Source: Neoconidiobolus thromboides FSU 785 (Eukaryota > Fungi > Entomophthoromycota). From it: 64,000 nucleotides of DNA. Below the pieces are notes generated by a model. That model searched no databases. It had not been told where the DNA came from and saw nothing but the letters and a program-made list of their open reading frames with translations. This document shows positions 250-62,798 of the stretch, piece by piece (positions within the stretch are counted from its first letter, which is position 1; each line of letters opens with the position of its first letter). Position numbers and translations under genes: made by a program. Location: positions 306 to 64,305 of the forward strand of contig MU626377.1 of the NCBI GenBank assembly GCA_025603075.1, in the 5' to 3' direction.

Positions 250-355
250 ATATGGGGATGTATTTTTATGTTTAAGAATTTACTAACAATTTTTCCACTC
301 AAATAGTGCTTAAAAATGGGAAAAGTAATGAAGCCAAAAAAAACACCCCCCATAT
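250..355 (+). mobile_element. MITE family A copy (coordinates include TSDs)
   Basis: GGGGATGT...ACACCCCCC termini, conserved core TTTTTCCACTCAAATAGTGCTTAAAAATGG, flanks ATAT/ATAT. Confidence 0.9.
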
Positions 356-636
356 TGTACAATCAAGTTATATAAAATTTAATTCATCTATAGGCTTAAA
401 CTTGTTTAAAAAACTATTTTTACTCAAAACTTAAAGCTTGAAAACATTCTATTGTTATTACTATTATTACTAAATGTATGTTATGGAAAACTAAATTTTT
501 ATAGCACTATAATAGGTTCAATACTCAATGTAGCAAATTTTTATATAAAAGAATACAATTATATTAATTAATTTGAGTTTGAATAATATTTTAAAATTTC
601 AATTTAAAAAGTGTACAAAATTTAGGTTGTTGGAAG

Positions 637-741
637 ATGTGGTAATGTTTTTTTGGCTTCATTACTTTTTCCATCTTTTAAGCGCTATTTGAGTGAAAAA
701 TTGTTAGCAAAACTCTTAAATACAAAAATACATCCCCATAT
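637..741 (-). mobile_element. MITE family A copy
   Basis: Full reverse copy, flanks ATGT/ATAT, 243 bp upstream of the MATE ATG at 984. Confidence 0.85.
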
Positions 742-983
742 ATTGATATAGATTAATAATCAAAAATGTTAAGGAAGAGTGATTATGATTCTCAAAGTAC
801 AGTTGGCTCGTTAAAAGGAACAAAAAGTCGGAAATTCAGCTTTGAAAGACTGAGTATAAGTCTGTCATCATACTTTAAAGAATTAAATTTTATAAAAACC
901 CGAAATCAAGTGCTATGAGTATTTTTTTAAAAATATAAAAGTAGAGATATGAATCATTAAAAAATTCAAATTCTCATGAAAAA

Positions 984-2503
984 ATGGATAATAAAAAGAA
1001 CAATGAAGAATTAAGTAGTAGCTCACCATCAACTGAAACTAGCCCTTTACTTTCCAAACCAATTGACGATAAAGAACAAGATATATCTTATCCGTTTAAA
1101 ACTCAGGCGATTATTAATGAAATATTTTACATAATATCATGTGCAGTTCCAATCATTCTATCTACTTTTACCCAATTTGCTACTCCTACACTTAATTTAT
1201 ATTCCATGGGTCAGTTTTCTGCTTTAGAGGTTAGTTCTGCTGCGCTTTCGAACTTATTTTATAATGCCACCGCTAACTCATTAAGTTTGGGGATGGCAAC
1301 TGCATTAGATACATTATGTTCCCAGTCTTTCACAGGTTCAAGTGACAAACATCAAGTTGGTTTACATTTACAAAAAGGAATGATTATTCAGCAATTAATG
1401 TTAGTACCAGTTTATATTATATGGTGGTATTCTGAGTCTATATTACTTCTCTTAAAGCAAGACGCTGAGATGGCTTTTCTCTGTGGTCAATACTTAAGAG
1501 TCATGATTTTAGCTACTCCACCATACATTGCATTTGAATTACTGAAGAAGTATTTACAAGCTCAAAAAATCATGCGTGCTCAAACCTGGGTTCTGTTGGC
1601 TTCATTACCAGTTACTTTCTTTTTGAACTATATGCTTATGTGGAATCCAAAAACCTCTATTGGATTTTTAGGCGCTCCTTATACTCTCCTTGGTTCTAAC
1701 TGGACTTTATTTATATTTATGGTATTGTATATCAACTTTATTGAAGGTAAAGAATGCTGGGGAGGATGGAAAGAACAAAGTCTTAAAAACTGGGGAGTCT
1801 ATATTAAACTAGGGCTCTCTGGAATCCTAATGGTATGTTCTGAATGGTGGGCAGTTAATATTATGTCATTCAGTGTCAGTTATTTAGGCAGAGAAGCATT
1901 GGCAGCACATGCTATTACTATCAATATTGATATCATATTCTACTCATTTGCTATAAGCCTATCAATCGTAGCCAGTAACAGAATCGGGAACTTGTTGGGT
2001 TCAGAGCATATCAATCGAGCAAAGTTGGCTACTTTGTGTTTGGTTGGATTGGGATTGGGGATTTCTATGATGAATGCTTGTATTCTCGTTTTATTTAAAA
2101 ATCAATTTGCTTCTATCTTTACTCATGATGCCAATTTACAAAAGATCATTCTTACTTTAGTCCCTTTCCTTTGCTATTATCATGTAAAATATTTTCGTTT
2201 TTAATCATAACTATGACTAACTTTTTAAAGGTATTCGATAGTATCACTTGCATCAGCAACGGTATTCTAAGAGGACAAGGTAGACAAAAGATTGGTGCAG
2301 TAGTTAATTTAGTCAGTTGGTATATTATTGCTATACCAATTAGCTCCCTCCTTGGCTTTGGGCTACACTTTGGAGTTCAAGGAGTATGGGGTGGACTTGC
2401 TACAGCCCTTACATGTACTGGAGTCTCACTCACCTATTTGATGTCGAAGTCGGATTGGAATCAGCTAATTGGGAATGCTAAAGCCAGATTAAATTCTGCC
2501 TAG
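984..2503 (+). CDS. MATE family efflux transporter, 2 exons (984-2183, 2231-2503; ~490 aa)
   Basis: Motifs LGMATALDTLCSQSF, LKKYLQAQ, SEWWA, NRIGNLLG, GILRGQGRQKIGA. Intron 2184-2230 is GT..GACTAAC..AG and joins the two ORFs in frame. Confidence 0.95.
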
Positions 2504-3122
2504 CTACTTGAACGCATTTACACATTTTAATCTTATTTACTAAATGTTTAGAAACATAGAGTCCGGAGGTTTATGGGGCTCGGTTGAATGTTGTAACTTT
2601 ATAGAAGTTAATAAACGAGTAGAAAAATAAATGATATTATCTTTGGAATTATCATCTCTTGTTTTTTGTTTATTCGCTACATTTATCATTGACTCGTTAA
2701 AGTTGTTAGTAGAAATAGAATTATTACAGAAGTTGCTATTTTAAAACTGATATGAGATAATTTTATACTATACTATATAATAATCAGTGGTTATTCGAAA
2801 GCTTATCAAAACTATTTTACTAACAAAATATTATGTGATGATATTGCTATTTAGGAAATTTAGTTTTTTAATAAAAAGAATTTTTAGGTTTTATACCATA
2901 TAAGAATGGCCAAATCAGCAATAAAAAACAATTAATATATCAACTTTATAGTTTCTTTTTAGAAATACGTGGCTATGACAGTATTTATTTATAGTAAAAG
3001 AGATATTTTAAGAGAAACAGAGTTATAGTGTATTTTTAAGGATCGAAAGTATTCTCTAATTCTCTAATTTAAAAGCGACTAGGAATGACTCATTAGTTAG
3101 AAAGTGCTTCCACTCTGAACTG

Positions 3123-3380
3123 AATGAAGAAATAAGAACTAGACCACATTTATTTCCAAGTACCATTTTACAATAGTATATATGGATAGCCCGTATTATG
3201 GATATTGCAAGAAATGGCAAATCGGAATTGGAGCAAGAAAAAAACAGATTTGAAATAAATAATAAATTGCTGCCTCACGTGATATTATCACCTTCAATAT
3301 TATTACTTACAACAAAAGAGATTGTTAACCAGGCTTTCTGGATATAAGAGCAACTGGAGAAGGAATTTTATGATTTTAAA
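3123..3380 (+). pseudogene. Decayed coding fragment, identity uncertain
   Basis: About 85 codons read as protein-like sequence (EEIRTRPHLFPSTILQ*YIWIARIMDI...AFWI*EQLEKEFYDF) with only two stops in AT-rich DNA. Confidence 0.25.
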
Positions 3381-3468
3381 TCTGAATTAATTTTAAATAG
3401 CTTATAAAATATTACAAAAAAACCATGTATATCTTTATACTTTAATTTTAACAGATATTTATATAATG

Positions 3469-4560
3469 CTAACTTATACACATTTGAATTGAAGTAAACC
3501 TATAACTATCATAATAAAACAAGCAATTATTAACACTTAAAAAAGACATTTAGATAAAACGCAATCAGGATATGTGGATGTTTTTTTTGGCTTTATTATT
3601 TTTTCCATCTTTTAAGCGCTATTTGGGTGGAAAAATTGTTAGTAAAATTCTCAAATACAAAAATACATCCCCATATTCTAAATTGCTAGTTTTACATAGA
3701 GTAGTTCTATCATGTTCTAAAAGCAATTCATTATGGTTGTGGGAATTTCCAAGGATTTAGGAAGGTATTCGTATCTTGATATCTCTACTGTTAACAATCA
3801 TGGATGCCTTTAATATTTATAAATTAAACCATTTAGCAAAAGCGTCATTTCCAATCCTTGGTTCACTATAAGGGAGCAACTCCATTTGATCTCAATTTAA
3901 ATTCAATAATTTTAAGTCCAATAGAACTTATAGAAACTCCGTCACCTAAAGTACGATCTGTAATAATAATTCTATAATCATCACATTGTTTTAATGAAGC
4001 AGCAAACTCGTTTTTAAACCTGTGTAAAAATAATTTCATTCGATAATCTAATTCAGATTGGATATAAATGTTATTATCGCTATTTTCAACTGAGTATGGT
4101 GTTAGCAAAATTTGAAAATCAGCAATTCGATTCCGTAAATTATAATTACCTCTAAAAGATATAATGATTTATTTTGTGGCATCGTCTAAAGCCAAAAATT
4201 CTCTACCTCCTAAAATAGGTTCATCAAGCATGTATTGAACTTGAATACCATCACCTGCTTTTTTACAATAAACACAATTCCAGCTTTCTAAAATAAGACT
4301 ATTATAATAAGTGGTCCCAGAAAATTCGGATTTTTTTTTGCTTCATGTAGAGTACCAAATTTTAGATTAGATATAGTGAAGCTACATTGATCAATTGAAC
4401 TTCCTTATATATAGGTAATATTAATGAATTTTAAACCCTTAATAAAAATGGACCAAGTTAGGATCATTTCTAACATCAGGTAATTGAACATTGTCACTGA
4501 TTTGTACTGCAGTTCAATCACTCACTTTGAATCAATAATAGTGAAAGGGTTGATCAACAT
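3469..4560 (-). pseudogene. Class-3 (Lipase_3) secreted lipase pseudogene
   Basis: Minus-strand translation gives WNCVYC, IIISFRG, IADF, YRIIITDRTLGDGV (GHSLG position), YSEPRIGNDAFAKWFN, LEYPDC. Has several stops and frameshifts and a MITE insertion at 3570-3676. Confidence 0.85.
3570..3676 (-). mobile_element. MITE family A copy inserted in lipase pseudogene
   Basis: Flanks ATAT/ATAT. Removing the element plus one ATAT restores the frame T-S-N-L-E-Y-P-D-C. Confidence 0.92.
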
Positions 4561-5156
4561 TTGGCTGAAAACTATTTTCTGTTTTATGTTGAGTCGTTTG
4601 ATCAATTTATATCAATCTAATACAACATCTTTTGTCCAGTATTTGACGTGTGAGTTTAAAGGCATAATTATGATTATTCAATTTTAGTTGATTAGTTTTA
4701 AACTAAGCAAAAAAAGCCCCGTTTTCATAATATTCGGCTTTGGTTATCAGCTTTTATAAGAAGTAACTCGAAAATGGATTTAATCTTGAGTATAAGTAAA
4801 CTCAAGTTATATCTATTCATTATCAAACTTAGTATATAACCTAACCTTTTTCAATTCCTTAAAAGCTATAAGATTTTTATATTGAAAATTGATCTTTTTA
4901 ATAAAATAAATGTATAGAGAGTGAAATTTTTATATTATGAATACTTATTCTAAAAAAATTCGCTATATTTATGACTATCGTATCAAGTACATAGCTAAAG
5001 TACCAATTCCAAGATTTAGACTCTAGTCTTCTATATTATAAACAAAATATGATAGCACTAAGTTATAAGATCAAAAATTAATGTCTCATAAATAAATTTA
5101 CTACCTCTGTCTGGGAAAGAGGGCCCGGTTTGAGAAGACCCTTTGGTTTTATTAAA

Positions 5157-5263
5157 ATATGGGGATGTATTTTTGTATTTAAGAATTTTACTAACAAATT
5201 TTCCACTCAAATAGTGCTTAAAAAATGGAAAAAATAATGAAGCCAAAAAAAACATCCCCATAT
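5157..5263 (+). mobile_element. MITE family A copy
   Basis: Near-consensus copy (5161-5259, 99 bp), flanks ATAT/ATAT. Confidence 0.93.
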
Positions 5264-5463
5264 AGTAAAATATATACTTCTTTTTAAAAAAATTGCTTAC
5301 GTTGAGGATTATACAACAATGCTAGTATGGAATTTCTAGTATCAATACTGGTGGAGTTGTAATTTTCTAAAGTTTAAACAACCTCAGAATTTTTCAAAAT
5401 GCTTTGGCTATTTGACAAATATTAAGCAATTAGACATGACTTTTTACATTTTTGAAAAGGTTA

Positions 5464-5569
5464 GTATGGGAATATATTTTTATATTTAAGGACTTTACCA
5501 TCAATTTTTCGATTCAAATAACGCTTAAAAGATGTAAAAAGTGATGAAGTCAAAAAAACATCCTCATAT
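5464..5569 (+). mobile_element. MITE family A copy (diverged)
   Basis: GGGAATAT...ACATCCTC, flanks GTAT/ATAT. Confidence 0.8.
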
Positions 5570-6165
5570 AATGTTAATTATAAGTTTTTTAAGTTCTACT
5601 ATAATTAATAAAATATTTTAAAGCTTACACAAAAGAATTATAGCAAAATTTAAGATTTTAATCAAACCTCTTATAAATATCTAATATTATTGTAATAAGT
5701 CATGATAAAATCAATTAAGCATGATCGTTCGTATTATATTAATATAAAAATAATATTAGTAAAAAATCTTCATCAAAATTAGCCTTTATAGAAAAAATGT
5801 AAAATTTATATTATGTTTATGCTATTTTATTACACTTGTAATAATTCCAGAATATACAGTATAGTATTAGTAAAAAATAAATATTCTTATTTTACGTTAA
5901 AATCAATATAGAAATGTTTGAATTGATTTTATTTTTTTGTTTTATTTTTCAAATATTTTATATTAAGAATTTTGCTTGAAGTTTTATAAAAATAATTTTT
6001 TTACTAAAAGGCAAATTACTTAACAGTTTTAAATTATTTATTATAATATACGTTATATGTTAGTAGAATTTCTATTAGTTTCAATAAAAATTATTATATT
6101 GGCAAGGAATTTACTAACATAACTTATGTATTAACATTAATTAGAGTTATAATATGCAAATAAGT

Positions 6166-6272
6166 ATATGGGGATGTATTGTTGTGTTTGAGAATTTTAC
6201 TAACAATTTTTTCCGCTTAAATAGCGCTTAAAAATGGAAAAAATAATGAAGTCAAAAAAAACACTCCCATAT
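6166..6272 (+). mobile_element. MITE family A copy
   Basis: Full copy, flanks ATAT/ATAT. Confidence 0.9.
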
Positions 6273-6535
6273 GTTTTTGTAAAGCTTTATTAAAAAATAT
6301 TTATTATCAAATGCTTTATAACTGATATTTTAGATTTGCTATTAAATAAACAAATAAATAATTTCAATGCTGCAATTCCATTGTTGATATATTATTAAGT
6401 TAACAAATAACTACCTAGGAGGAAGTAATTGGCTCTAAGACTATAATTATTTATTTTTATATAACACAAACAATATAATGATAGTTTTTTGATTATTATT
6501 ACTACTTGTTTTTTGATTATTTATCAACTTAGCTA

Positions 6536-6997
6536 TGTGAAATATCGCTTTGTTAGCTCTATGATTGATTATAAAATAACAATCACTCAAATTGTTGCGT
6601 TCTGGAGTTCAGAGACAATCAATCCTATAGTCCTATTTTGATTTGTTATGAGAATTTCTAACTTCGCTTCAAAGAATGCTATCCTCTCATTTTGATATCC
6701 ATACCTGTTAGGGTACAAAAAAGGTTTTAGAACATAATAATTCAAGACTTTTTAATTATACTGTTCTCTGATATTGTACCTTTAATAAAGTCACTAAGTC
6801 TTTCTGATATTATTTTATGTAGATTTCACATTAGTATTATCTATTCCATTTGTCTTACATAGTCCATAGCCTATTACGTGCTATTCTTCATAATTCAAGT
6901 CTATCTTGGTCACATAAACTAAGACATTTCGACTTACAGTATAGTCAACTAAGCAAGGACTGCTTTTGATTCCAGTCACTGAATACCAGATTTCATA
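6536..6997 (-). mobile_element. Solo LTR-like repeat, family B (~460 bp)
   Basis: Reverse-complement homolog of 50580-51045 and 57385-57848. Termini TGTGAAAT...ATTTCATA, flanks GCTA/GCTG. Confidence 0.75.
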
Positions 6998-7155
6998 GCT
7001 GTTAGTAACTTCAGTAGTGTCAATATTTAATAAACTATTTGCTTGTTTAATAAATATTGAGTTTGATTTTTTAATTTTTTTTAATTTTCTATGAACTTTA
7101 TAAATTTAGTTAAAGTTATATTAAAATTTTTTAATTTGTTAAATACTGGATAATA

Positions 7156-7262
7156 ATATGGGGATGGATTTTTGTGTTTAAAAATTTTACTAACAACTTT
7201 TCCTCTCAAATAGTGCTTAAAAGATGGAAAAAGTAATGAAGCTAAAAAAAACACCACCATAC
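7156..7262 (+). mobile_element. MITE family A copy
   Basis: Full copy, flanks ATAT/ATAC. Confidence 0.88.
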
Positions 7263-7402
7263 AGTTTATTGCTATATTTAATAAAATATAAACATTTTTT
7301 AATACTTTGTTTTTTTTGTTTTTTTTTGTTTTTTGTTTTTTTGTTTTTTATGCTTTTTAAAAATTATGCTTGTTTTTCTATTATTTAGCTATTAGTCTTA
7401 TT

Positions 7403-7478
7403 ATATGTGAATATATTTTTTGTCTAATTTTACTAATAATCTATCCACTCAAATAGTGCTCAAAAAATATCACCATAT
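7403..7478 (+). mobile_element. MITE family A, internally deleted copy
   Basis: GTGAATAT...CCACTCAAATAGTGCTC..AATATCACC. Shares its right ATAT with the next copy. Confidence 0.7.
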
Positions 7479-7580
7479 GGGAGTGTATTTTTGTATTTAA
7501 GAATTTTACTAACAATTTTTCCACTCAAATAGCGCTTAAAAATGGAAAAAGTGATGAAACCAAAAAAAACATTCTCATAT
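7475..7580 (+). mobile_element. MITE family A copy (middle of abutting trio)
   Basis: Full copy, ATAT shared with a neighbour on each side. Confidence 0.9.
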
Positions 7581-7683
7581 GGGGATTTTTTTTTTGGCTT
7601 CATCATTTTTTCCATCTTTCAAGCGCTATTTGAGTGGAAAAATTGTTAGTAAAATTCTTAAATACAAAAATACACTCCCGTAT
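7577..7683 (-). mobile_element. MITE family A copy (inverted partner of 7475-7580)
   Basis: Junction CTC-ATAT-GGGG, right flank GTAT. Confidence 0.9.
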
Positions 7684-7726
7684 GGTAAATTATAGTTTAA
7701 TACTTCAAATAATCAAAATAAACTTC

Positions 7727-7832
7727 ATTTGGAGGTGTTTTTTTGGTTTCATCACTTTTTCCACTTTTTAAGTACTATTCAAGCAGAAAGATTATTAGTA
7801 AAATCTTTAAATAAAAAAATACATCCATATAT
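7727..7832 (-). mobile_element. MITE family A copy (diverged)
   Basis: GGAGGTGT...ACATCCAT, flanks ATTT/ATAT. Confidence 0.8.
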
Positions 7833-8105
7833 TAAAGTTCGTTTTAAAAAATGTCTCAAATTAATAAATAACGTCTACATTCTATGGAAATCGGTTATAA
7901 CTAATCACACAATCTACAAAAACATTACTTTATTATATTATTTAAATAAAATAGTATCAACTTAATTCTTTTTTTATTAAAATTAGATCTATCAATTAAA
8001 GAAAATTTAAAAGAAAATTAAATCTTAAATATCAATTATCCATTTTAATTAGCGTAATAAGCTTAGTTTTAATAAAAAAAACAACTTTCCCTTCTTTCCT
8101 CTTGT

Positions 8106-11100
8106 TTACTCCACATCTCCAACTTCTTCGCTTTCAAATATAGTATCCAATAGCTGAGTTGTATTTCCAGGTGTTTGTTCAAGTACTCTAGTAGTTGGAC
8201 CTTCTACGGCACTCAATTTACTCTGTTCTCCTTCATCAACTTGTTCTTTTTCTCTAATAGGCCCAGCAGCTTCATCTAGTACTTTAATATAATTGAAATA
8301 AGGGAGCCAATCGGGTATGGATTCTTTTGGATTATAAATTTCCATTGAAGTTTTGGTTTGTTTCATTCTAAATAATTAAGAAAATTAATAAAAACAGATT
8401 ATTTATTTTAATTTCAAATTAAAAGTTTAAAGTTAATAAAATAATAAACTTACAATTCTCTAGCATGTAATGGTACTAAAATACTTTTAACTACTAAGGA
8501 AAGTAATCGATATGTTTTTAATACTTTTAATTTTAATTTTTCCAAATCCTCTTTTGTTTTATTTTCCCCCTCTACTCCTTCTACTTCCCCTTCTTTGTCC
8601 TTATTTTCACCTTTCATAACTTTGATAACTTCTCTTATAAAAACTTGATGTGTTTTGGCTACATTTTTTGATGTTAATGTAGTATGTTTACCAATGTTTC
8701 TTAAAGTAGTTGCTATTAATTTTGTTAAACTTAAAGTTCCATGAAATTTATCTTCATCAACCATTGACTTTTTATAGGACTGAAAACAAAAAATAAAATA
8801 TTATTAATTATATAAAATAAATTTACCTCATAAACTACATCTTCCATAAATTTTAATGTTGATTCAAATACCTTAATTTCTTTTGTACGTTTGATTTTTT
8901 CCTTTAGATTTTGATAAAATATTAATTTAACACTTTCGTCAATAATGGGATCCATTAAACCAAAATTTTGAATTATATTAATCATTAGTTCAATTGGATA
9001 AACATTTAATAATGCTGTACGTAACATTGATATTATAATTTGTACATAACTTTCTCTTAATGAAGTTTGTTTTAATATAACTATCATTTAAAATAAATAA
9101 AGAATAAAGTTATTAATATTTATGTAGTTAATTAATTAATTATAATCTTACATGGATGTTCATTCTCTGCTAATCCTTCCTCATATTGTTTTAACAAAGC
9201 TTCATCCCATTCTTTCGTTATATTACTAGTAAATAACTTACAATTTTCCTGTAATGTTAAACTGGAAGGTAATAAAGAAATACTCTGTTGAAATATTGGA
9301 GTTTGAGTATCTAGCCAAGCAATGTCACAAATCATGACAAAACTCTATTAAAAAATAGATTAACTTTTGTTTCTTTTTTCAAAAATAAAATAAAATAAAA
9401 TAAAATAAAACTTACAAATCTTTTAACATGGAAATAATTTCGATTTTCTTGTTTAAATTGTTCATCAAATTGTAAAATATCTAATAAATGGCCTAATAAT
9501 TCTCTTCTCAGATTATTTAATTCTTTGTCTGAACCAGTTTCAGTTAATTGATTGTCAATGGTTGATTTACATAACCATAAATAAATTCGATATTTAATAT
9601 CTAAACAAGCAATTGAATTCTAAATTTAATTAATTGTTGTTATTATTATACAACAATAAGTATAGCTTACTTTTAAATTAATATCAATTTGATTTTGATC
9701 TCCTAATTCAATTAATTGTATAAATATTTCTAATATTTCCGTTTTTTTATAATAAATTAAATTAATTCCCCAATCATTCAATATGAATAATACTCTTAAT
9801 CGCTGTAATTCAGGTAATATATTTTCTGCATCATTCTAAACAAATAAAAAATAAAGAATTATTAATATCAAATCATATTACATCATATACTCTTCTCATT
9901 AATATATTCATATATTCAAACTTACTTTATATAATACTATTTTATCAGCTATATCATCAAATAATTTTTCAATAAATGATTGGAACTCTTGTGGTGGAAT
10001 AGTATCAAAAGTAGCTAAACTTTTTAAACTCAATGTAATTTGATATAACACCAAAGTATCACTATGAGTTAAAAATAACTTATTAATTTGTAATAATAAG
10101 TGTTCATAAGACTATAATAAATAAATAAAATAACATTGATATTAGTCAATATTAACTATCGTTATTACTAAAATAAACTCACTTTCATTTTTCCTGCATC
10201 TAAAAATAACTCCCCATTCAATGTGATTTCAATTAATTTTAATACTGAAATAATAGCTTCATCATTTGAAAAATACTTATTAATTAAAGCATCAAATGGT
10301 CGAGCTTCTTGAAGTAAATAATCTTTTAAATTAATAAAAGGATGAATTTCAATTGACTAAAACAAACAAAATTAGTTAAATTGGCATTATTCTATTGTTT
10401 TAAATTATTAATAATAACACAAGATATTTACCTTTTTTTCCAATTTTTCTTGGTTAATATCATTTAATTTACTTTCTTCCAATAATAATTTAAATGCTAC
10501 TTGCATAATTTTTAACAATAAAATATCTTCTTTTTCATTTAATTTAATTCCTCTTTTTCGATTTTGTTTATTTTGTTGTCCAGATAACTCAATTAAGGTT
10601 TTCCAGTCCTAATAAAAAAATAGAAAATTATTATTCATTATTATTTTTTATTATTATTGTTCTTACTTTAATAAATTCTAATTGATCCCAAAGAGCAGTA
10701 ACAATAGTAGTAATCATATTGTTTTGAGTTACTTTAGAAGCCAGTGAAAAACCATCGATAATATCTAATAATCCATTTTCATTATGATTTAAAAAATCTA
10801 ATTTACTATCCAATAAGATTTGCAATAAACATTTAACTCCTAACTGATTAATTTCATTTTCCTTCAACTTTCCTTTATTAGTTTCTAATACATCTTTACT
10901 TATTTCAGGTATCATTTCCTCAATAATAACATATTTAATAAAAGGAGCAATTGATTTTTGTACTTTTTCTTCTTTTGAAAATAACACATTAATCATTTTC
11001 TTTTTTTCATCTTCATCTAACAATCCATTTTGATGTAATTTATAAATCAATTTAATAGCTGAACATTTTACATTAAGTTCAATTTCTTTTAATCCCATTT

Positions 11101-11777
11101 CTAATATTCTTTCTTTATAATTACTAATAAATTGTTGAATAAATGTGGAAATCCCTTCTTTTTTTAAGATAATACTAATTCCTGCTAATGCTTCATTACG
11201 TACATTAGATGCCTATAATTTTATTAAATGTTGAATTTGATATTATTTTACAATTATAATTATAATTATTAATAAAATTACTTTATCTGATAACAACCAA
11301 CCTAAATATTTTAAATGTTCATTATTTAAAAAATAAGTGGGATATTTTAATGTAAATGAAGCTAATTCACTAGCACACTCAGCCCTTATATTATTATCAA
11401 TATCTCTATATCGAGGCTCAAATACTCTATAAATAAAATCAAAATTAGAAATTTCAATTTATTTTATTCTATTAAATTATTCTATTTTAAATAATAATAA
11501 TCTTACTTATCAAAAAATAATTCTAATATAGCTTCAAATTGATTTAATTGTTCTTCTAGTTCACTTTGTTTTTCCATTTGTTTCTTTTTTTCTCCTAAAT
11601 TTGATTTTTTCTTTTTCATTTGTTTAATAGCATTATTTTTATTATGCTCAATTTCAGAACATCCTTCACTTAGAAAACTCATAATATTTAATGCCAAACT
11701 AGTAGCTGTAATACGAAAAGGACGGTAATTACAGCTATTAAGTAAAGGGAATTAAATAAAAAATAAAATATTAATGC

Positions 11778-11857
<80 letters not shown>

Positions 11858-12431
11858 TACCTGGACATTCCGATTAACCAATTCATTAATAAAGATAAAA
11901 AGGACATATCTGAGATAACATCATATAAGCCCAGTTTAAATAATTGTTTAAAAAATTCAATTAATCTTTTCTTTATATGTTTTTTTTCTTTTGATTTACT
12001 ACCATATGGAAATTCATTGTCTTCTTCTCCCTATTTAAATAAATAAATAATAAAATTAATATTGGTCATTATTATTTTATATTTATGAATAATTCAATTA
12101 CAGTTACTTACCGCCTCAATCTTATCTTGTAGCTCTTCTAATACTGTATCAATTTTAAGTTCCCCTTGAATTGATTCTTTAGATACTACGATTGAACTAC
12201 CAGCACACTATAATAAAATACATATATAATTAATATAAATTATAAATGTTATTATTGCTAAGTCAGTATTTTACTTTTACAATAACACCCAATACTTGAT
12301 AAATAGCTTCAATTTGTTCTTTACTTGTATAAAGTTGAATCCAGTCTTTAACTAATTCTTGTACAGCGATATCTGTTTTAAAAATATTATCTAATAAAAA
12401 ATAAGTAAAATTAATTATAAATTAAATAATG

Positions 12432-12463
<32 letters not shown>

Positions 12464-12602
12464 ATAGAATACCATATAAATTTAAACTATTATCTTCAAC
12501 ACATAAGTTTAGAGTAAATTCTTTGGATTGATTTTTTTCTAATTTTCTTTTCTTAATTCCCTTTTTAGTTGGGGTTTTTGATTTTACTCCGTGTTTAGTC
12601 AT
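8106..12602 (-). CDS. SCC3: Cohesin subunit SCC3/STAG (IRR1/Psc3), many short introns; exon boundaries not all resolved
   Basis: Exon translations RPFRITATSLALNIMSFL, FEPRYRDIDNNIRAECASELA, HLKYLGWLLSDK, NVRNEALAGI are STAG/SCD-domain motifs. Basic N-terminus MTKHGVKSKTP. Confidence 0.88.
11785..11856. repeat. (TAT/AAT) trinucleotide microsatellite, ~24 units, intronic
   Basis: Uninterrupted TATTATT... run directly after the minus-strand splice donor near 11860. Confidence 0.95.
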
Positions 12603-12951
12603 CTTTTATTTTTTTTTCTTATTTTTACTTTATAAAAATAAATTTATATTATGATAATAAAAAAGATAAAAAGATATTTATTATTGAGAATTGAAGCCTT
12701 AAAAAAAATCAATTAAATTGTATTGAAATTTCAAGGATAGAAATCATCAGTAAAATGGAGCTTTAATTGGCTAATTGAAAGTATTAGTAAATTTGATGAT
12801 TGATTTTTGAAATGAGTTAACAATTTTCAATAAACATTCAATATAATTGGCTAAAACTAAAATATTAATATTATAATAATTTCTATTAAAAAAGCATTGT
12901 TTCTAATCAAATTTAAACTACTCATATTTTATTATCGATATTATCACATAA

Positions 12952-14728
12952 ATGAAACCAGATATTAAAAAAGTCAAAATAATTCATCCTTTTTTTACCA
13001 AGATTAATCAACCTGTTAGTACTACTTCCAATTTATTGACTTGGGAAGAAAAACACGAACAAAGTTTATTAATTGGGTATTATAAATTTAATAAAGAAAT
13101 CAAATCGAACAGTATATTGGCATTTGATTTAGATTCTACTTTAATCAAAGTTAAAGGTAATCATGTTCATGCTAAAGATGAGTTTGATTGGGAATTTTTA
13201 ATTAAAGATATTAAACAAAAGATAAAAGAAAGATTAAAAGAAGATCAATTAATGGTAATATTTTCCAATCAAAATGGTTTAGAACCAGAAAAGATGAAGA
13301 AAAATGACAAAAGGAAAATACAATTTAAAAACAAATTAAACGCATTTACATCTCAGGTAAATTAACTATAATTATAGTTATAATTAGAATAATAATAATA
13401 TTTATAATAATAATTATAATAATAATTATTATTATTATTATAAATATTGTTATTATTAAAAGTTAAGTTTTTTGGTATTAACTTATTTTTATTATTATAT
13501 AATAGTTAAATATACCAATGATAATTTTAGCAGCTACAAAAAAAGATCAGTATCGTAAACCTTTAATTGGGATGTGGAATGTATTATGTGAGATCTTAAA
13601 TTATGAACCTGATAAAAATCAAAGTAGTTATATTGGTGATGCTGCAGGAAGAAAAAAACAAGGGAAATTAGCTAATAGAAAAGATTTTGCTGATACAGAT
13701 AGGTAATCTATTAGTTATTAATTATTTTAATTAAGAAGTTAATTTATTTGATTTTTTTAATTATTAACATTTGAATATAGGAAATTTGCTTTAAATTTAA
13801 ATCTTGATTTTTTTACACCTGAAGAATATTTTTTAAATATTCAAAAAGAAGAATTTAATTTAACTGGTTTTAATCCAAAACAATATATTAAAAATATTGG
13901 TAATTATAATTCTTTTTTATGTTAACTAATTAATATATATATACTCATAATAATTTAATTTAATTTAATTTAGAACATATAAAAAAAGTAGAATTTAAAA
14001 AAAAGTATGAATTAGAAGTAATATTATTAGTTGGTTTACCCGGTAGTGGTAAATCGCATTTTTATCATAATATTACTAAACCTTTAGGATATGAGAGGAT
14101 TAATATGGTAAACTGATAATAATAAATAATAATAAACAACATGATTAATATTATTTATTATTATTTTAGGATACTTTAAAAACTTCCAAAAAATGTACAA
14201 CTAAATTAGAAGAATTATTAACTAATGCGAAATCAGCTGTTATTGGTAAGTAAAATCAAAAGCAAAGTATATTTAATAACTATAGAATAGTTACAATAAT
14301 TAATATACTTAGATAATACTAATTTGGATATTAAATCACGAGAATTATATATAACAAAAGCAAAAGAACATAAAGCTAAAATAAGAGTAATATTATTTAA
14401 TATGAACATTGATATTTGCTATCATAATAATTTATTTCGTGCTTATCATCCAACAGATAAGGTAATTAAAATGTGTTTTTATTAATATTATATTTAATAT
14501 TATTATTTAATAATAATATTTGTTTTCTTATAGGATGAAATTCGAACTCCAGTACCTAAAATGGTTTATGATATTTCATTGAAAAAATATCAAGAACCTA
14601 CGTTAAGCGAAGGTATTGATGAGATTCAAAAATGGCCATTTATTCCATTGTATTTAGATAGTGAAATTGAAATATGTAATAAGCAAAGGACTCATTATAA
14701 AAAATATTGGGAATTGTTTTATTTTTAA
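12952..14728 (+). CDS. PNKP: Bifunctional polynucleotide kinase/3'-phosphatase, multi-exon
   Basis: HAD motifs AFDLDSTLI, VIFSNQNG, YRKPLIGMW, YIGDAAGR, DTDR..FALN; kinase P-loop LVGLPGSGKS; DNTN. Confidence 0.92.
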
Positions 14729-49664: not shown

Positions 49665-50579
49665 AAAATAAAATGCAAGCTTTCATAGCTAAACTTCGAA
49701 ATGGGATTTTTGAAAATTTTAATACAATAGAGAGGAGCACATTATAAATGTTATAATTCATTTGCGTTATTTTAACAACTATTCATAATAACTCAAAGTT
49801 TATGGAATTTTATAATAAAACAAAAAAAAGAAACAAAAATGGTTAAAGTTTATCAATAATGAGAATGTTTTTTTTAACTTCATCGTTTTTTCCATTTTTT
49901 TAAGCGCTATTTAAGCGAAAAGTTAGTAAAATTCTTAAATACAAAAATACATCCCCAATAATAAACTTAAGTAATATATGAAATTAATGCTTACGGGAAG
50001 TAGGAAGCAAAAACCAATAAGTAGCATTGTTATCAATTATAACTTCAGTATGTTCTTTTGATGAATGTAAAAGTTTTAGATTTAACATAAATAGAAACCA
50101 ATATGGTTATTCAAAAATAAGTAATAATAATAAAATAGCAGCATCACAGCCTATTATTAAAAATACAAAAAAAATTAATGACCAAATTGAAACTATTGTA
50201 CAGTATTTACTAAACAGCTCAACTATTTCATCAAGATTTAATAAAAAAATAGTGATAGTAAATATTCATCAGATAATATATATCAAATAAAGTAGAAGAA
50301 TCATATACAGTAAATACTTTGATGGTTTAAAAGGTAAAGCAGTAGCTAGGCCAACATTTTTTAAATATATACCAAATCATTTCAAAAACGCAACAAGAAA
50401 AACAGATTTATGTAATATATATGCCCAGTATACAGTTAGAAGAAAGTTGTTTAAAAATAAAATAAATACAGTAATAAAAAATAAAGCAAAGATAGAAGAA
50501 ATTTCCAATAAAGAAGAAAAGTCATATAAATTACATAAATTCTATATTGGTACTCAAAAAAACATATTTAATGAGACTA
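49665..50579 (+). mobile_element. Repeat family C: decayed DNA-transposon 5' part with transposase-like frame (50027-50579)
   Basis: 5' region aligns with 54877-55292 and the reverse complement of 57849-57940. Frame of ~185 codons with one stop (50288), containing LSII, YLLNSSTISSR, IYSKY, RPTFFKYIP, TDLCNIY. Cut by an LTR at 50580. Confidence 0.55.
49857..49960 (-). mobile_element. MITE family A copy nested in family C
   Basis: GAGAATGT...ACATCCCC, flanked by AATAAT on both sides; absent from the family C copy at 54877. Confidence 0.85.
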
Positions 50580-51045
50580 TGTGAAATCTGGTACTTAGTG
50601 ATTGGAGTCAAAAGCAACTATTACCTGATTGACTACACTGTAAGTTGAAAGGTCTTAGTTTATGTGACTAAGGTAGACTTGAATTATAAAGAATAGCACG
50701 TAATAGATTACAAGCTATATAAGACAAATAGAATAGACAATACTAATGTAAAGTCTATGTAAAATACTATTAAGTAAACTTAGTGGCTTTATCAAGTGTA
50801 GGAGATATCAAGGAATAATTCAGTTAAAAAGCCTCGAGTTACTATGTTCCAGAGTCTCTTTTATACTCCAGCAAGTATGGGTATCAAAATGGGGAGATAA
50901 TGTCCTTCGGAGTCATATTACAGAAATTATCATAGCAAATCAAAATAAGAGTATGGGATTAATTACCTCTGAACTCGAAAGCACAACAACTTAAGTGGTT
51001 GTTATGTTATACTCAATCATAGGGGTGATAAAGCGATATTTCACA
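50580..51045 (+). mobile_element. Solo LTR-like repeat, family B
   Basis: TGTGAAAT...ATTTCACA termini (TG..CA with short inverted repeat), internal CTATATAAG TATA-like box, no matching TSD. Confidence 0.8.
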
Positions 51046-51049
51046 GTTC

Positions 51050-54531: not shown

Positions 54532-54740
54532 TTAATGTTTTTTAAAATAACAATTCTTGTAGTGTTTATTCAATTGAAAGGGTTACAACATCGTTAATAA
54601 AATTTAAGCCATTTATTACTCTTCCAATTTAAACAGATCCATATAATGTATTTTTTATTTAAAAATTCTATTAGCAATTTTTTTAATTATATGTTTTATA
54701 CTATTTTATTGAATGTTTAATAGATATATAATATATAAAT

Positions 54741-54843
54741 ATATGGGGTGTTTTTTTGGCCTCATTACTTTTTCAACTTTTAAGTACTATTTGAGCGGGA
54801 AATTGTTAGTAAAACTCTCAAACACAGAAACATATCCCCATAT
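54741..54843 (-). mobile_element. MITE family A copy
   Basis: Full copy, flanks ATAT/ATAT. Confidence 0.88.
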
Positions 54844-54876
54844 AGTTATATAGTTTATTTTGCTTTATTTTTTATT

Positions 54877-55292
54877 AAAATAAAAGCAAAATCCAAGCTT
54901 TTATAATTAAACTTCAAAATGGAAGTTTAGAATTTTTTAATATAATAAAGAAAAACACACTATACGAACATTGTAATTCATTTATATTAATTTTGACAAC
55001 TATTTATAATAACTCAGAGTTTACGGAATTTTATAATAATAATAAACTTAATCAAGCAACATATAAAATTAATACTTTAAAGAAAACAAGAAACAAAAAT
55101 CAATAGATAATATTATTATCAATTATAACTTCAGTATATTTTTTTGCTAAATGCAGTTTTGAATTTAATGTAGATAGAATTAATATAGTTTTGAATTTAA
55201 TGTAGATAGAAATTAATATAGTTATTCAAAATAATTAACAATAATAAAATATCAAGATTACAACATACTATTAAAATACAAAAAAAATAAAT
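54877..55292 (+). mobile_element. Repeat family C copy 2 (5' part)
   Basis: Aligns with 49665-50180 and contains an internal ~32-bp tandem duplication at 55155-55219. Confidence 0.65.
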
Positions 55293-55320
55293 ATAAATTA
55301 AAACTAAAAATAATAAAAAT

Positions 55321-55426
55321 AAAAGTAAATATTTTTTTTAGTTTTACCACTTTTTTTATTTTTCAAGCACTATTTGAGTAAAAAAGTTATTAATAAAATT
55401 TTTAAACAAAAAACATATTTCTATAT
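55321..55426 (-). mobile_element. MITE family A, degenerate copy
   Basis: Core CAAGCACTATTTGAGT...TAAAATTTTTAAACAAAAAACATATTTCT-ATAT. Confidence 0.6.
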
Positions 55427-57168: not shown

Positions 57169-57181
57169 ATATGGGGATGTC
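57169..57181. mobile_element. Isolated family A terminus
   Basis: ATAT-GGGGATGT with no internal sequence following. Confidence 0.35.
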
Positions 57182-57384
57182 CAAATTGGTTTTGTTTTTT
57201 ATTTAATTTTTTATTAAAAAGGAAAAGTATCTGATACAGTTCTAAATTATTATATTATAGTTTATATTGTAAATTAGTTGAGTTTCTACTAGACCTAATA
57301 AAAATTGCCATATTAATAAGGCTTTTACTGATATAATATATATTAATATTAATCAAGGTTGTAGTATATAAATAAATACATGGG

Positions 57385-57848
57385 TGTGAAATCTGGTACT
57401 CAGAGTTTGGAGTCAAGGACAGCTATTGTTGGATTGACTACACTATAAGTCGAAAGGTCTTAGTTTATGTGACTAAGATAGACTTGGATTATGAGGAATA
57501 GCACGTAATAGGTTACAAGCTATATAAGACAAATAGAATAGACAATACTAATGTAAAATCTATGTAAGATACTATTAAGAAAACTTAGTGGGTTTATTAA
57601 ATGTTCGAGATATCAAGGAATAATTCAGTTAAAAAGCCTCGAACTACTATACTCTGTAAACTCTTTTATACTCTGAAAAGTATAAATATCAAAATGAGAG
57701 GATAATATTCTTTGGGATGGAGCTAGAAATTCTCATAGCAAATCAAACTAAGAACGTGGGATTGATTTTCTCTGAACTCAAGAACATAATAGCTTAGGCG
57801 ATTGTTATGCTATAATTAACCATGAAGCTGACAAAGCGATATTTCACA
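57385..57848 (+). mobile_element. Solo LTR-like repeat, family B
   Basis: TGTGAAAT...ATTTCACA, collinear with 50580-51045, no matching TSD. Confidence 0.8.
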
Positions 57849-57940
57849 GTTTATATTGTGTACTCTTCCCTATTGTATTGAAATTTTCAAAAATTCCATT
57901 TCGAAGTTTAGTTATGAAAGTTTTCATTTTGCTTTTATTT
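57849..57940 (-). mobile_element. Repeat family C fragment abutting LTR
   Basis: CTATTGTATTGAAATTTTCAAAAATTCCATTTCGAAGTTTAGTTATGAAAG matches the reverse complement of 49665-49750. Confidence 0.65.
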
Positions 57941-58533
57941 CAACAAAAAATAAAGTCAAATAACTATATTTATATAATTATATAATCATATAGTTATATA
58001 TTATATATCTATTAAATATTTAACAGAAATAGTATATTTCTAAGTAAATTCTGAAACCAATTCGGGCAACCCCAATATCCTTATATTATTTTAGTTAATT
58101 TAATCCAAAGTATTAGGTTTACCTTCTATTTGTTTAGATACACTTGAAAACTTATCTTTTTCATCGGCCAAGCATTGGACTTACCTTGCCTTTATATTGA
58201 TTTATCAGTTAGTATAGCAATGGGCTTAGGGGCTTGAAAGTCTTTATTATTTTTATATGATACTATCAGACTTACTTTTTATTTTGCTGTTCAAGGTATT
58301 TTTTAATTTTTACATATTAATTTAATGAATCATTCATTTTATTGTGTCAGTTTAATTAATTTGGATACTTAAGAGTGATTTGTTTATTAAATGTTTAGTT
58401 TTAACTTCAATTAAGATTAGAGAATAATTCAATATAAGATAATATTTTCTATTATTTATTTAAAGTTTTAAAAGAGAAGGGCATAAAATATCGTCAATAA
58501 CTTTAATGAACCAAATATCAAATAAAAGTCAAC

Positions 58534-60224
58534 TTAATTTTCACAAAGTTCTAATCGTTTTTTAGCGTCAGCAAATAATTGATCCCAATTAGAAAACATA
58601 ACAAAATAAAATAAAGCAAAAGAAGTACCAAAAAGAGCAATACAAATACCATACCACATACCAAATAATCCATATTTTAAATAAAAAGCTAATACAATAC
58701 TAATTGGTATAGCTACACAATACCAAGATAATAAATTCACTATACCACCTATCTTTTGTCTACCTTGACCTCTTAATATACCACTACAACAACACGCTAC
58801 ACTATCAAATACCTAATAACAACACATTAGTATTAATAACATTAATATTGTATTTAAAATTAAACTTACATGATATACACAAGTGAATGGAATTAAAACG
58901 ATTAATATATCTTTCAATTCTTTAACATTAGTAAATAAAGAAGCAAATTGATGTCTAAATGTAAATAAAAACAAAGAATTAAAGATTGGTACAGTAACGG
59001 ATAATAATATAGAACATGAAGAAGTTAATTTGGCCCTATTAACATGGTGTGCACCTAATAAATTACCAATTCGATTACTAGCAACAATACCAATTGATAA
59101 GGAATAAGCATATAACATTGAATCAATATTAAGTGCTATAAAATGTGCTGCAAGTGAATCCTCACCTATAAAATAATAATTTAATTTAATTTAGTCTATT
59201 TTTATATTTTGTATTTCAACAATAATAATGATAAATAAATAAGTAAATAAAATATTACCTAAATAACTAACAGTTAAAGATATTAAACTCCAAGCCCACC
59301 ATTCAGAACATAACATTAATATACCATTTAAACCCAAATTAATATAAATTGAAAAATTAGTTAAACAATCTTTCGTCCATCCACCCCAGCACTCCAAACC
59401 TTCAACATAATAAATATATATCATCATGGATAAAAAAGTAATCCAATTAGAAAATACAATTGTAAACGGAGCGCCAATAAAACCAATTGATGTAGTTGGA
59501 TGCCACATTAAAAAATAATTTACAATAATAGTAATTGGTACAGTTAATAGAAATACCCAAGTTTGAGCTCGCATAATTTCTAAAATAAAAAAGATTAAAT
59601 ATTAAATATTATGCTATTATATTACACTATGAAAAATGACTTACTTTGAGCTTGTAAGTACTTTTTCAAGCATTCAAATAAAATATAAGGTGGAAAACCT
59701 AAGATCATAATTCTTAAATAAATACTTGATAACTTAGCCACTTCTGGAGTTTGTTGTAAAAATAATAATAGTGATTCAGAGAACCACCAAACAGTAAAAA
59801 TTGGGATAGTCATCATCATTTGAATAACGATTCCTCTTTGTAAATGAACTCCTACTTGTTTTTTATCACTAGCTCCTGTAAATGCTTGAGAACATAATGT
59901 ATCTAATGCGGTTGCCATACCTAGACTAATTGAATTTCCTGTTGTATTTGCTAAAGTGGCTCCTAATGCAACTGCACTTATTTCAATAGCTCCGTATTGA
60001 CTCATACTATATAAATTAATAGTTGGTATACTAAATTGAATAAAAGTAGATAATATAATTGGTATTGCCGATGTAATTAAATAAATTAATTCATTAACAA
60101 TAGCTCTATAATGATAAATAAAAACTAAATCATGTTCTTCATTCTTAATACATTCTGCTAACAACAGACTATTTTCACTTGTCCCTTCTTCTATTGTATT
60201 AAAACTGTCACTTTTTTTATCCAT
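58534..60224 (-). CDS. MATE family efflux transporter, multi-exon
   Basis: LGMATALDTLCSQAF, LKKYLQAQ, SEWWAW, NRIGNLLG, GILRGQGRQKIG. Confidence 0.93.
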
Positions 60225-61004
60225 GAATTATTTGTTGTTAGGAATTCTATTTATTTTTTATAAAGAAGATAAGCTCAAATTTCATTCTTAATTTATAGAT
60301 AGAACAATTTAGGTATAGCGCAGCAATTCTCATAATTACCGACTTTTTAACGCAAATGGGATAGTTTTAATTCATAAGTAATTGTGACTCGAAATTCAAT
60401 TAAAGTATTAGAATATTAATTCTTGACTCAAAAGAAATCATATACTATAAAGTAAAAGAGATGAATGTTTCATCGCTATTATATCTATAGTATGTCTTAT
60501 ATGCATCCTTAGCACCTTCTTTGAGTTAAAGAGGATTTAGAATGAGACATTTATTTACAAAAATAGTAAGAATAAAAGCTGCGACAAAATTAGATGCGAA
60601 ACTTTGCAAATTTAAAAAAACTGGAATTTAAAATAAAAATAATTTAAAAACTATAAAAATCAGATGAGAAACTTTGCAATTTTAATTACTAATTCAGAGC
60701 TTAATATTCTACTCATTTAAACTAACAAAAAGATTAAGGATCATGAGTTTTAGTTGATAAAGGAGCTTAAAGATTAAAATTATATTGCTTTTCATACAAT
60801 GATTGAATGATTTTCTTTGTAAAAATTATTATTAAAAAGTTATCAAAAATAACGATTTTCATTGTCTTTAAAATATCCGATGCTTTGTTTTCTTCAAGCT
60901 TTTATGACTTATCATTAATATTATTTAATTAACTAATATTTATTATACCTCAAAGATCTTTTGTGATATACTTGACTCGAAGTTTTAACTTATTAGTTAC
61001 TTTG

Positions 61005-61082
61005 GAATTTTACTAACAGCCTTTTCGTTCAAATAGCGCCTAAAAAATGGAAAGAGTGATAACCAAAAAAACATCCTCTAAT
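61005..61082 (+). mobile_element. MITE family A, 5'-truncated copy
   Basis: GAATTTTACTAACAG...AAATAGCGCCTAAAAAATGG...ACATCCTC. Confidence 0.7.
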
Positions 61083-61419: not shown

Positions 61420-61840
61420 CATCGGATCTCATACCCAATGACTGGAGTCAAAAACAGCTATTGTCTGATTGACTTACATTGTAGGTCGAAAGATCTTAGT
61501 TTGTGACTAAGATAGACTTGGATTATGAAAAATAATACGTAATAAGCTACGGAATATGTAAGACAAATAGAATAGACAATACTAATGTAAAATCTACGTA
61601 AAATATTATTAAGTAAACTTAGTGGCTTTGTTAAGTGTTCAAGACATCAAGGAATAATTCAGTTAAAAAGCCCAGAGCTATTTATCTTTTAGAAGTTCTT
61701 TTATACTTCGATAAGTATAGGTACCAAAACATGGAGATAATATTCTTTAGGACGAAGACACAAATTCTTATAGCAAATCAAACTAAAAGTATGAAATTGA
61801 TTGCCTCTGAATTCAAGAACTCAACAACTTAAGTGATATT
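61420..61840 (+). mobile_element. LTR-like family B copy, 3'-truncated by a MITE
   Basis: Aligns with 50580-51010, 5' end decayed, stops at the MITE terminus at 61845. Confidence 0.75.
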
Positions 61841-61877
61841 ATACGGGGATGTATTTTTGTGTTTAAGAATTTTACTA
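61841..61877 (+). mobile_element. MITE family A, 3'-truncated copy nested in LTR
   Basis: ATAC-GGGGATGTATTTTTGTGTTTAAGAATTTTACTA. Confidence 0.8.
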
Positions 61878-62188
61878 TTAATACAAAATAAGTAGCTCGA
61901 AGAAACAAAATTTACTTTAATAATAAAGCAAAAAACAAATTATTTGAGAAAAATGCCAATTAAATTAAGTAAAATTGACTAGCATTAACCCTGGTTTTAA
62001 TTCTTAATTTAACTATTAATATTTTTACAAATATAGTGATTTGTTATATATATAGCAGTGTTTTTTTAATTGAAATAGTGTAATAAACTACAAAGTAATT
62101 TTTTTTAAAAATTCCAACTAATATTGTAAATAAAGCTTTATTTTCATAAGTATTAAATAATTTTTTTAAATTCAAGGTTCAAAAGATT

Positions 62189-62293
62189 ATATTGGGATGT
62201 TTTCTTTGTTTCATTGCTTTTTTCATTTTTTAAGCGCTATTTGAGTGCAAAGATTGTTAGTAAAATTATTAAACAAAAAACATATCCTTATTT
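62189..62293 (-). mobile_element. MITE family A copy
   Basis: TGGGATGT...ATATCCTT, flanks ATAT/ATTT. Confidence 0.82.
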
Positions 62294-62297
62294 TATT

Positions 62298-62540
62298 TGT
62301 TACACGTAATACGTTAAGGAAGAGTAAAGTGGAGTCAGGATTAGCCTAGGACAATTATTAAAGAAAGAAGTGGATTTAAAAATGAAGTTACTCATGGCAG
62401 ACATCAAGAGAACATAGGATAATATAAGGTGATTGAGTGGACTTTGTTAAGAGCTCCTGAGGATGGTACACTCGACCTCCAAATAAATGATCCTGAGACA
62501 CTCAGTAAATAGAGAAGCACGGGAAGATTTGAACAAACAT
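62298..62540 (+). mobile_element. LTR-like family F copy (3'-truncated)
   Basis: Starts TGTTACAC, aligns with the reverse complement of 23400-23640. Confidence 0.5.
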
Positions 62541-62701
62541 TTATAACCTTATAATTGCTTTAAATATTTTTAGTTGACTTCAAAAGTTATAGTTTTATTC
62601 AATATTGAATAAGTTTATTAAAATAAAAAACTACAGATTCATTAAGTAAACTTTGTTTTAGTTCAAGGTTTACTATCTTGTTATAAAGCACTAATGATAA
62701 A

Positions 62702-62798
62702 ATATGAGGATGTATTTTTAAGGATTTTACCAATAAATTTTCCACTCAAATAGCGCTTAAAAAATGGAAAAAGTGGTGAAACCAAAAACACCCCATAA
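62702..62798 (+). mobile_element. MITE family A copy
   Basis: GAGGATGT...ACACCCC, flanks ATAT/ATAA, 50 bp beyond the GPCR stop codon. Confidence 0.85.

Follow-up and report, generated by a model that had tools for sequence, protein, structure and literature searches.

A miniature inverted-repeat transposable element (MITE) of about 99 bp, of the form GGGGATGT...ACATCCCC, recurs through a 64,000-nt window of the genome of the fungus Neoconidiobolus thromboides FSU 785, and is probably a member of the Sola superfamily, group Sola2. The group assignment comes from element X, a decayed repeat of ~2.36 kb in the same genome with a broken frame of ~565 amino acids (aa). The window is nearly all of scaffold MU626377.1 (64,305 bp; assembly GCA_025603075.1); window positions equal record positions minus 305, and base composition is 26% G+C. 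Four further loci from the same assembly, L002, L004, L005, and L006 (69 kb), were added. Sola transposons are among the least studied of the cut-and-paste superfamilies. The Sola2 group was reportedly defined by Bao and colleagues in 2009, and reportedly the three Sola groups can hardly be aligned with one another; we know of no Sola transposase that has been studied biochemically.

The repeat is short and non-coding, with terminal inverted repeats (GGGGATGT(A)TTTTTG and the reverse complement of GGGGATGTTTTTTTTG) and many copies, as expected of a MITE. A preliminary description of the window had counted about 34 copies; blastn with its 98-nt consensus finds 33, and a hidden Markov model (HMM) profile built from 16 full copies finds 32. 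That consensus proved essentially correct, a 27-copy version (99 nt) having one A more and a different base at two positions. With three or fewer mismatches allowed, the window has 19 matches to the 23-nt terminus, against 0.01 expected. Positions given below are those of the HMM copies, with blastn also recorded for 254-351, 641-737, and 5161-5259. Of the window copies, 27 measure 90-100 bp, full length or close to it, and the others are fragmentary or internally deleted; fragments lie at 29232-29303 (+; profile positions 12-89), 55332-55413 (-), and 61000-61076 (+; profile positions 18-96), a copy at 61845-61881 (+) has the first 37 nt followed by a very degenerate remainder, and one at 62191-62287 (-) has degenerate ends. 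None is inside an open reading frame (ORF) of at least 150 aa in the window, and none inside a gene model at 9.1-30 kb, the part for which models were returned, in agreement with the earlier statement that the copies lie outside intact genes. Scans of the window for tRNAs and Rfam families gave no match, so that a tRNA-derived short interspersed nuclear element or a structured RNA, both considered, is unsupported.

Target duplications were read as the four bases before GGGG and the four after CCCC. Within the window, ATAT stands on both sides of 11 copies, three of them after a 1-3-nt shift of the element end: 254-351 (+; full length, 3% from consensus, ATAT/(C)ATAT), 3574-3672 (-), 5161-5259 (+), 6170-6268 (+; beside a fragment from the 3' portion of element X), 7479-7576 (+), 15056-15150 (-; once its end is corrected), 20626-20723 (+), 22097-22195 (-), 29410-29505 (-), 49226-49322 (+), and 54745-54839 (-). 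Two copies have ATTT/ATTT, at 15251-15350 (+) and 45694-45791 (-; AAAT/AAAT on the + strand), and one has AAAT/AAAT, at 22818-22916 (+); exactly these three had been singled out beforehand for their non-palindromic direct repeats. Flanks are imperfect by one mismatch in 11 copies and by more in two. Examples are 641-737 (-; ATAT/ACAT), 5468-5565 (+; GTAT/ATAT, an old copy 19% from consensus), 7160-7258 (+; ATAT/ATAC), 7581-7679 (-; ATAC/ATAT), 7729-7826 (-; ATAT/AAAT, also old, 21% from consensus), 20728-20827 (-; GTAT/ATAT), 23115-23208 (-; ATAC/ATAT), 32831-32925 (+; TTAT/ATAT), and 62706-62795 (+; ATAT/ATAA), together with 40064-40158 (-; ATCT/AACT) and the degenerate pair ACAC/GTAT at 27917-28014 (-). 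The mismatches are spread over outer, inner, and central positions, and are about as numerous as 10-15% decay predicts.

Twenty of the 21 copies at the four added loci are also full length. Taken with the window, 30 of 47 full-length copies have perfect 4-bp repeats: 20 ATAT, five ATTT, four AAAT, and one TAAT. Because the changes are paired (TT with TT, AA with AA), they do not represent independent decay of an ATAT carried by the element itself. A 4-bp duplication is what the Sola superfamily would give; among the 47 copies there is one clear exception (49861-49956).

Filled and empty sites could be compared in several places. A MITE at L004 10648-10746 interrupts a copy of element X whose L002 counterpart is uninterrupted: the empty site reads ...gattttaaacaaaATATggaaatagg... 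(aaacaaaATATggaaat) and the filled one ...aaacaaaATAT[MITE]ATATggaaatagg..., a single ATAT having become ATAT-MITE-ATAT. The flanks of the copy at 22097-22195 are contiguous in a diverged paralogue, at ~4228-4230, and the length difference is again the element plus 4 bp. At 49861-49956 and 54745-54839 the comparison is ambiguous, with low-complexity AT runs and further indels in the paralogues. For a comparison among isolates, 4.5 kb of the window (3400-7900) was set against the contigs of three related DNA assemblies (runs X2, X3, and X4; 25-47 Mb each), X2 and X3 having the same organism label. These contigs are ~0.5% from the window in unique sequence, and so stem from close relatives. Single contigs in X3 (record 9) and X4 (record 16) align over 3400-3570 and then from 3675 onward, joining 3570 to 3675 with one letter between, so that four letters are kept where the reference has 4+99+4. 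The MITE at 3574-3672 is carried by run X2 and by the reference. The strain comparison proposed in the preliminary description therefore shows a presence/absence difference between isolates at this copy, the only one of nine in the 4.5 kb to differ.

Element X came to light through a protein search. A 97-aa N-terminal piece, compared with 1.84 billion representative proteins, matched five short ones (194 aa or less), four from N. thromboides and one from a metagenome, and the loci of these proteins revealed the repeat. Four full-length copies, 84-89% identical, are at L002 9520-11883, L004 9508-12005, L005 about 9764-12038, and L006 496-2855. The 20-nt inverted ends are GGGGTTGTCCRAATTGGTTT ... 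AAACCAATTCAGACAACCCC, beginning GGGG(T/A)TGTCC, with ATAT on either side in L002, L004, L006, and the window. The window itself holds pieces: 49653-50580 (+; X positions about 250-1090), with a broken N-terminal transposase frame at 50021-50581 and a stop at 50288; the more diverged 54676-55304 (+; about 70% identity); a 5' end at 57841-58073 (-; terminus GGGGTTGCCCGAATTGG); a 3' end at 57173-57311 (-; + strand terminus GGGGATGTCCAAATTGG, its first 8 nt those of the MITE, with an ATAT flank); and part of the 3' portion at 6286-6536 (-; X positions 1970-2218). Nested MITEs occur at no fewer than four separate positions within X, among them 49861-49956 (-) in one window fragment and 54745-54839 in another. 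At L004 10631-10750 a MITE splits the codons for the first catalytic motif, D-F-K-Q-N-M, in a Sola2-type transposase relic; here the MITE has broken a member of the very family presumed to supply its enzyme.

By its sequence, X is classed as a Sola2-type element. The comparison set was two published Sola2 transposases, Sola2_DFa-2 and Sola2_PPa-1, taken from the FASTA supplement of Bao and Jurka (2013; PMC3627910). Published Sola2 blocks include RSTFYKFVPS...NRTDTCPYC, MDFKENIALG...FYGKPQRSILG...FD.FSDVLNHCSSY, FWSDGAKHFKS, and YHGKSDVDRHF, and the motifs of the two reference proteins are DFKEN, W(S/C)D..(K/R)HFKS, and HGKS..D.HF (PMC3627910). The corresponding blocks in X are RSTFFKYIPS...RKTDLCNIC, LDFKQNMEIG...HYNKQAISVLG...FDYLSEILNHDSAY, IWADTGNHFRS, and HHGKSIVDGHF; they occur in natural frames (P0001-P0007) as well as in a five-copy consensus, and supply D-D-D motifs (DFKQN, W.DTGNHFRS, HGKS..D.HF) as in the dictyostelid Sola2 transposases. 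Two short stretches of Sola2_DFa-2 were aligned locally to the natural X proteins; z scores were 15-22 for the block with the first D and 9-13 for the N-terminal one, and a score as high arose in 0 of 2000 shuffles. Dictyostelid Sola2 elements make 4-bp AT-rich AWWT duplications (ATAT, AAAT, ATTT; PMC3627910), and the spectrum of duplications found here is the same; X thus combines a transposase alignable with those of Sola2 and an AWWT-type duplication. A 575-bp contig in a metagenome assembly (L003; ENA ERZ28578245) carries a related Sola2-like gene from the metagenome organism, whose 137-aa ORF, P0005, shares 39% identity with the X transposase and keeps the RATLYKY...TDMCEIC and ADFKQN blocks intact.

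General protein resources added little. The transposase-like frame at 49985-50579 has no Pfam match, and a Pfam scan of eight long ORFs plus 59 further stop-to-stop frames of at least 75 aa in the window gave no transposase domain, a result uninformative for Sola; Pfam has no Sola model (PMC5751038). Look-alikes of the X protein P0004 in the ESM Atlas were chance-level rows only.

The preliminary description had proposed mobilization by a Sola-like transposase and had taken AWWT as the signature of Sola1. The superfamily is probably right, X aligning with Sola2 proteins; the type is better read as Sola2-like. AWWT has been called a Sola1 hallmark (PMC3845634), and Sola1 is the Sola group most often reported from fungi (140 cases, in Rhizophagus and single Dikarya; PMC5751038), both of which would favor a Sola1-type transposase as the mover of the MITE. 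The same target is, however, reported for dictyostelid Sola2 (PMC3627910), so that it does not by itself separate the groups, whereas protein likeness does; the sole transposase-bearing element with the same terminal octamer and flanks aligns with Sola2 proteins, and no Sola1-like frame was noticed in a search made without a Sola1 profile. A Sola1 enzyme is accordingly improbable here.

The ATAT flanks would also fit A-TA-[T...A]-TA-T, that is, a Stowaway-like MITE of the Tc1/mariner/pogo kind with a TA duplication, true ends TGGGG...CCCCA, and an outer A and T that reflect a preference for ATAT targets. Three copies with a non-A at -4 and an A at +1 point the same way, as does a pogo/CENP-B-like DNA-binding ORF at 35670-36419. 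Nevertheless, the central dinucleotide is TT or AA in nine of the 30 perfect pairs, whereas Tc1/mariner elements duplicate TA; the TAAT/TAAT copy has T, not A, after CCCC; insertions add the element plus 4 bp; the pogo-like ORF lacks a DDE domain; and the enzyme encoded by X, whose ends and flanks are the same, is Sola2-like. Stop-to-stop frames of at least 75 aa in the window had no match to DDE_1, DDE_3, or Transposase_1. The TA-duplication reading is thus already largely refuted, and a Tc1/mariner/pogo origin is very improbable; the AWWT-type duplication of four bases rather than TA, as first described, is upheld by the 30 perfect repeats and by empty sites that differ by the element plus 4. 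The ORF at 35670-36419 (+; 249 aa) has CENP-B_N and HTH_Tnp_Tc5 domains and no MITE ends nearby, and looks like a domesticated or truncated pogo-type protein unrelated to the MITE.

How closely X and the MITE are related can be judged from their ends. The MITE opens with the octamer GGGGATGT and X with GGGGTTGT; GGGGATGT also stands at one end of X in the window, and overall the terminal 8 nt match at seven or eight positions. Further in on the 5' side, TTTMAGAATTT(T)ACT is common to both; on the 3' side an ungapped match over the last 34 nt reaches 74%, and for the whole end 0 of 5000 shuffles scored as high. This suggests that the MITE arose long ago by deletion from an X-like element. It had been suggested beforehand that a long element with MITE termini around a transposase should be sought: X is such an element in part, its termini being shared only over the terminal octamer and its frame being broken.

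A number of points weigh against a Sola2 MITE with X as its source. X ends differ from those of the MITE at positions 9-17, and without the terminal 8 nt the end likeness is marginal (p about 0.03-0.07), so that X may be a cousin of the MITE and not its parent. Every X copy seen is broken and no intact transposase came to light; in a word-indexed search of proteins up to 340 aa, the longest match was 310 aa. Two published proteins, both of them Sola2, made up the whole comparison from which X was assigned to that group. The MITE at 49861-49956, within an (AAT)n run, has an apparent 3- or 6-bp duplication. For AWWT targets, moreover, a 2-bp duplication around an element T...A yields a sequence identical to that from a 4-bp duplication, and the two can be told apart only by the single TAAT/TAAT copy and by analogy with Sola2. 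Finally, the polymorphic copy at 3574-3672 is 8% from consensus, so that excision or deletion is possible in place of a recent insertion. On the length of the duplication we nonetheless favor 4 bp, because the TAAT/TAAT copy has T after CCCC, central pairs extend beyond TA, and relatives are known to duplicate four bases.

For a Sola2 MITE, transposition would most likely run as follows. A DDD transposase made elsewhere in the genome would bind the GGGGATGT... inverted ends, excise the MITE, and paste it into a new site; a 4-bp staggered cut would be made at the target, and repair would duplicate the four bases. ATAT would be strongly preferred as target, with AAAT and ATTT accepted and other tetramers rarely used. 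The enzyme would come from the Sola2-type family represented by X, or perhaps from a closer, unsampled relative of X. We infer that a Sola2 enzyme moves the MITE, and that an active one exists or existed recently.

The target preference extends beyond the tetramer. Among 88 MITE end flanks from the window and the four added loci, the same bias appears on either side: A in 70% at -7, a pyrimidine in 78% at -5, and within the tetramer A in 91%, T in 82%, A in 83%, and T in 94%, for a symmetric rule of roughly A-N-Y-ATAT-R-N-T. This symmetry fits a two-fold symmetric enzyme-target complex. Six copies have AATTTAYY before ATAT on the 5' side, which was considered as a possible longer element end; since the 3' side shows an equal bias and sequences further out are unlike, the recurring AATTTAYY is read as target preference.

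Each insertion would yield two new ATAT sites, and copies beside older ones, in chains or tail-to-tail palindromes, are then expected. Neighbors sharing a single ATAT are found at 7405-7679, a chain of three in which an internally deleted copy (7405-7474, +) is followed by those at 7479-7576 and 7581-7679, the last two tail to tail; at 20626-20827, where the two copies are again tail to tail; and in L004, where a MITE stands beside an X 5' end.

The copies in the window are 3-21% from consensus (median 13%), with 233 transitions to 88 transversions, and in the 27 copies of the consensus the rate of change at G and C sites is 2.5-4 times that at A and T sites. The family is therefore old and has decayed toward A+T, with a few young-looking copies. 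Among the changes C>T and G>A prevail, a strong A+T-ward mutation bias that fits the base composition of the scaffold. All copies might then be fossils, and the difference at 3574-3672 a deletion between two ATAT repeats instead of a transposition. The median divergence, the 8% of the polymorphic copy, the broken state of all X copies, and the single difference among nine copies would all be in keeping with an extinct family; but the empty allele retains exactly four letters, like an unoccupied site, some copies are merely 3-5% from consensus, and X copies that were in place beforehand have taken up MITEs at no fewer than four separate sites. Extinction seems rather unlikely on this evidence. 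That the family is still moving in living N. thromboides strains, driven by an intact Sola2 transposase outside the sampled loci, is offered as a tentative possibility; if true, no active Sola element would have been known before from a culturable fungus, and this one would come with a defined substrate of ~99 bp and a sharp ATAT target.

The MITE is abundant well beyond the window. The 133 kb sampled contain 53 copies (32 in the window, 21 at the other loci), or ~0.4 per kb, occupying ~4-5% of the sequence, between genes, in an insect-pathogenic fungus. Each related-isolate assembly has 11,374-16,366 contigs that match the 4.5-kb stretch at 90% or more, nearly all of them on its MITE parts, with the reservation that summed contig depth is not equal to copy number; unaligned contig ends, in the hundreds, begin just beyond the 4-bp flank (5157, 5263/5264, 6272, 7580). 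These figures point to a copy number on the order of 10^3-10^4, and lend indirect support to the thousands of copies predicted at the outset. An RNA assembly (run X5) has more than 1000 contigs with MITE sequence, including one of 2.8 kb that starts with a copy. Many copies elsewhere are probably within transcripts, in untranslated regions or introns; an RNA library can also contain DNA.

Other features of the window can be described briefly. Another repeat family, ~465 bp long, has the ends TGTGAAATCTGG... / ...CGATATTTCACA and four non-coding copies 75-82% alike, at 6536-6995 (-), 50582-51045 (+), 57387-57848 (+), and 61436-61837 (+). They often abut X fragments; a place for this repeat within X was rejected, the junctions varying from copy to copy, and the repeat is probably one more non-autonomous transposon. 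A GGGG-type MITE, that at 61845-61881, is inserted in the copy at 61.4 kb and truncates it. The long ORFs are ordinary fungal genes, a Pfam scan of eight giving MatE, oxysterol-binding protein, Zn2Cys6, ADH, and PNP. Old segmental duplications with 66-75% identity relate 3883-4907 to 21419-22534, and 1107-2343 to both 58700-60104 and 29927-31283; three MatE transporter paralogues, all on this one scaffold, lie within them.

A 2017 survey of fungal cut-and-paste transposons found Sola1 in Rhizophagus and single Dikarya, Sola2 in one case, Aspergillus flavus, and Sola3 in Rhizophagus alone, and lists no Sola in the Zoopagomycota (PMC5751038). Full-text literature searches (Conidiobolus with Sola; Entomophthoromycotina with MITEs) gave no description of the MITE, consistent with its having been called undescribed, Repbase and Dfam lying outside the search; within the same bounds, the family would be the first Sola2 record for the Zoopagomycota. 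For annotators the MITE is a repeat to be masked in N. thromboides and related genomes, and for population work its copies are ready presence/absence markers. For tests of how Sola enzymes choose and cut their targets, it also provides a small substrate whose target rule (A-N-Y-ATAT-R-N-T) is clear.

This is a known kind of system with no new mechanism; what makes it notable is the density of its copies, the sharpness of its target rule, and a presence/absence difference among isolates. Closest are the dictyostelid Sola2 elements (DFa-1/2/3 of Dictyostelium fasciculatum and PPa-1/4/5 of Polysphondylium pallidum; PMC3627910), which likewise have ATAT, AAAT, and ATTT duplications and short inverted ends (12-22 bp), and share with X the blocks RSTF.K..PS...TD.C..C, DFK(E/Q)N, W.D...HF(K/R)S, and HGKS..D.HF in the same order. 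They are 10-15 kb long, however, with an 888-aa transposase and a captured Fanzor gene, as against 2.36 kb and a frame of ~565 aa in X; X ends also start with GGGG, its host is a zoopagomycete fungus, and it is accompanied by a ~99-bp MITE at ~0.4 copies per kb. The Sola1_NA MITEs of Bombyx mori and Rhodnius prolixus (PMC3845634) are also non-autonomous Sola elements with a 4-bp target (AWWT/AWDT) and ends starting with GG, but are longer (250-700 bp), number tens to hundreds of copies, have ends GGACCGTTTATT..., and have a Sola1 partner where the one here is probably Sola2. Stowaway and other Tc1/mariner MITEs are similarly short, AT-rich, very abundant, and found near genes at TA-containing sites; they duplicate TA only, whereas here four bases are duplicated and the central pair may be TT or AA.

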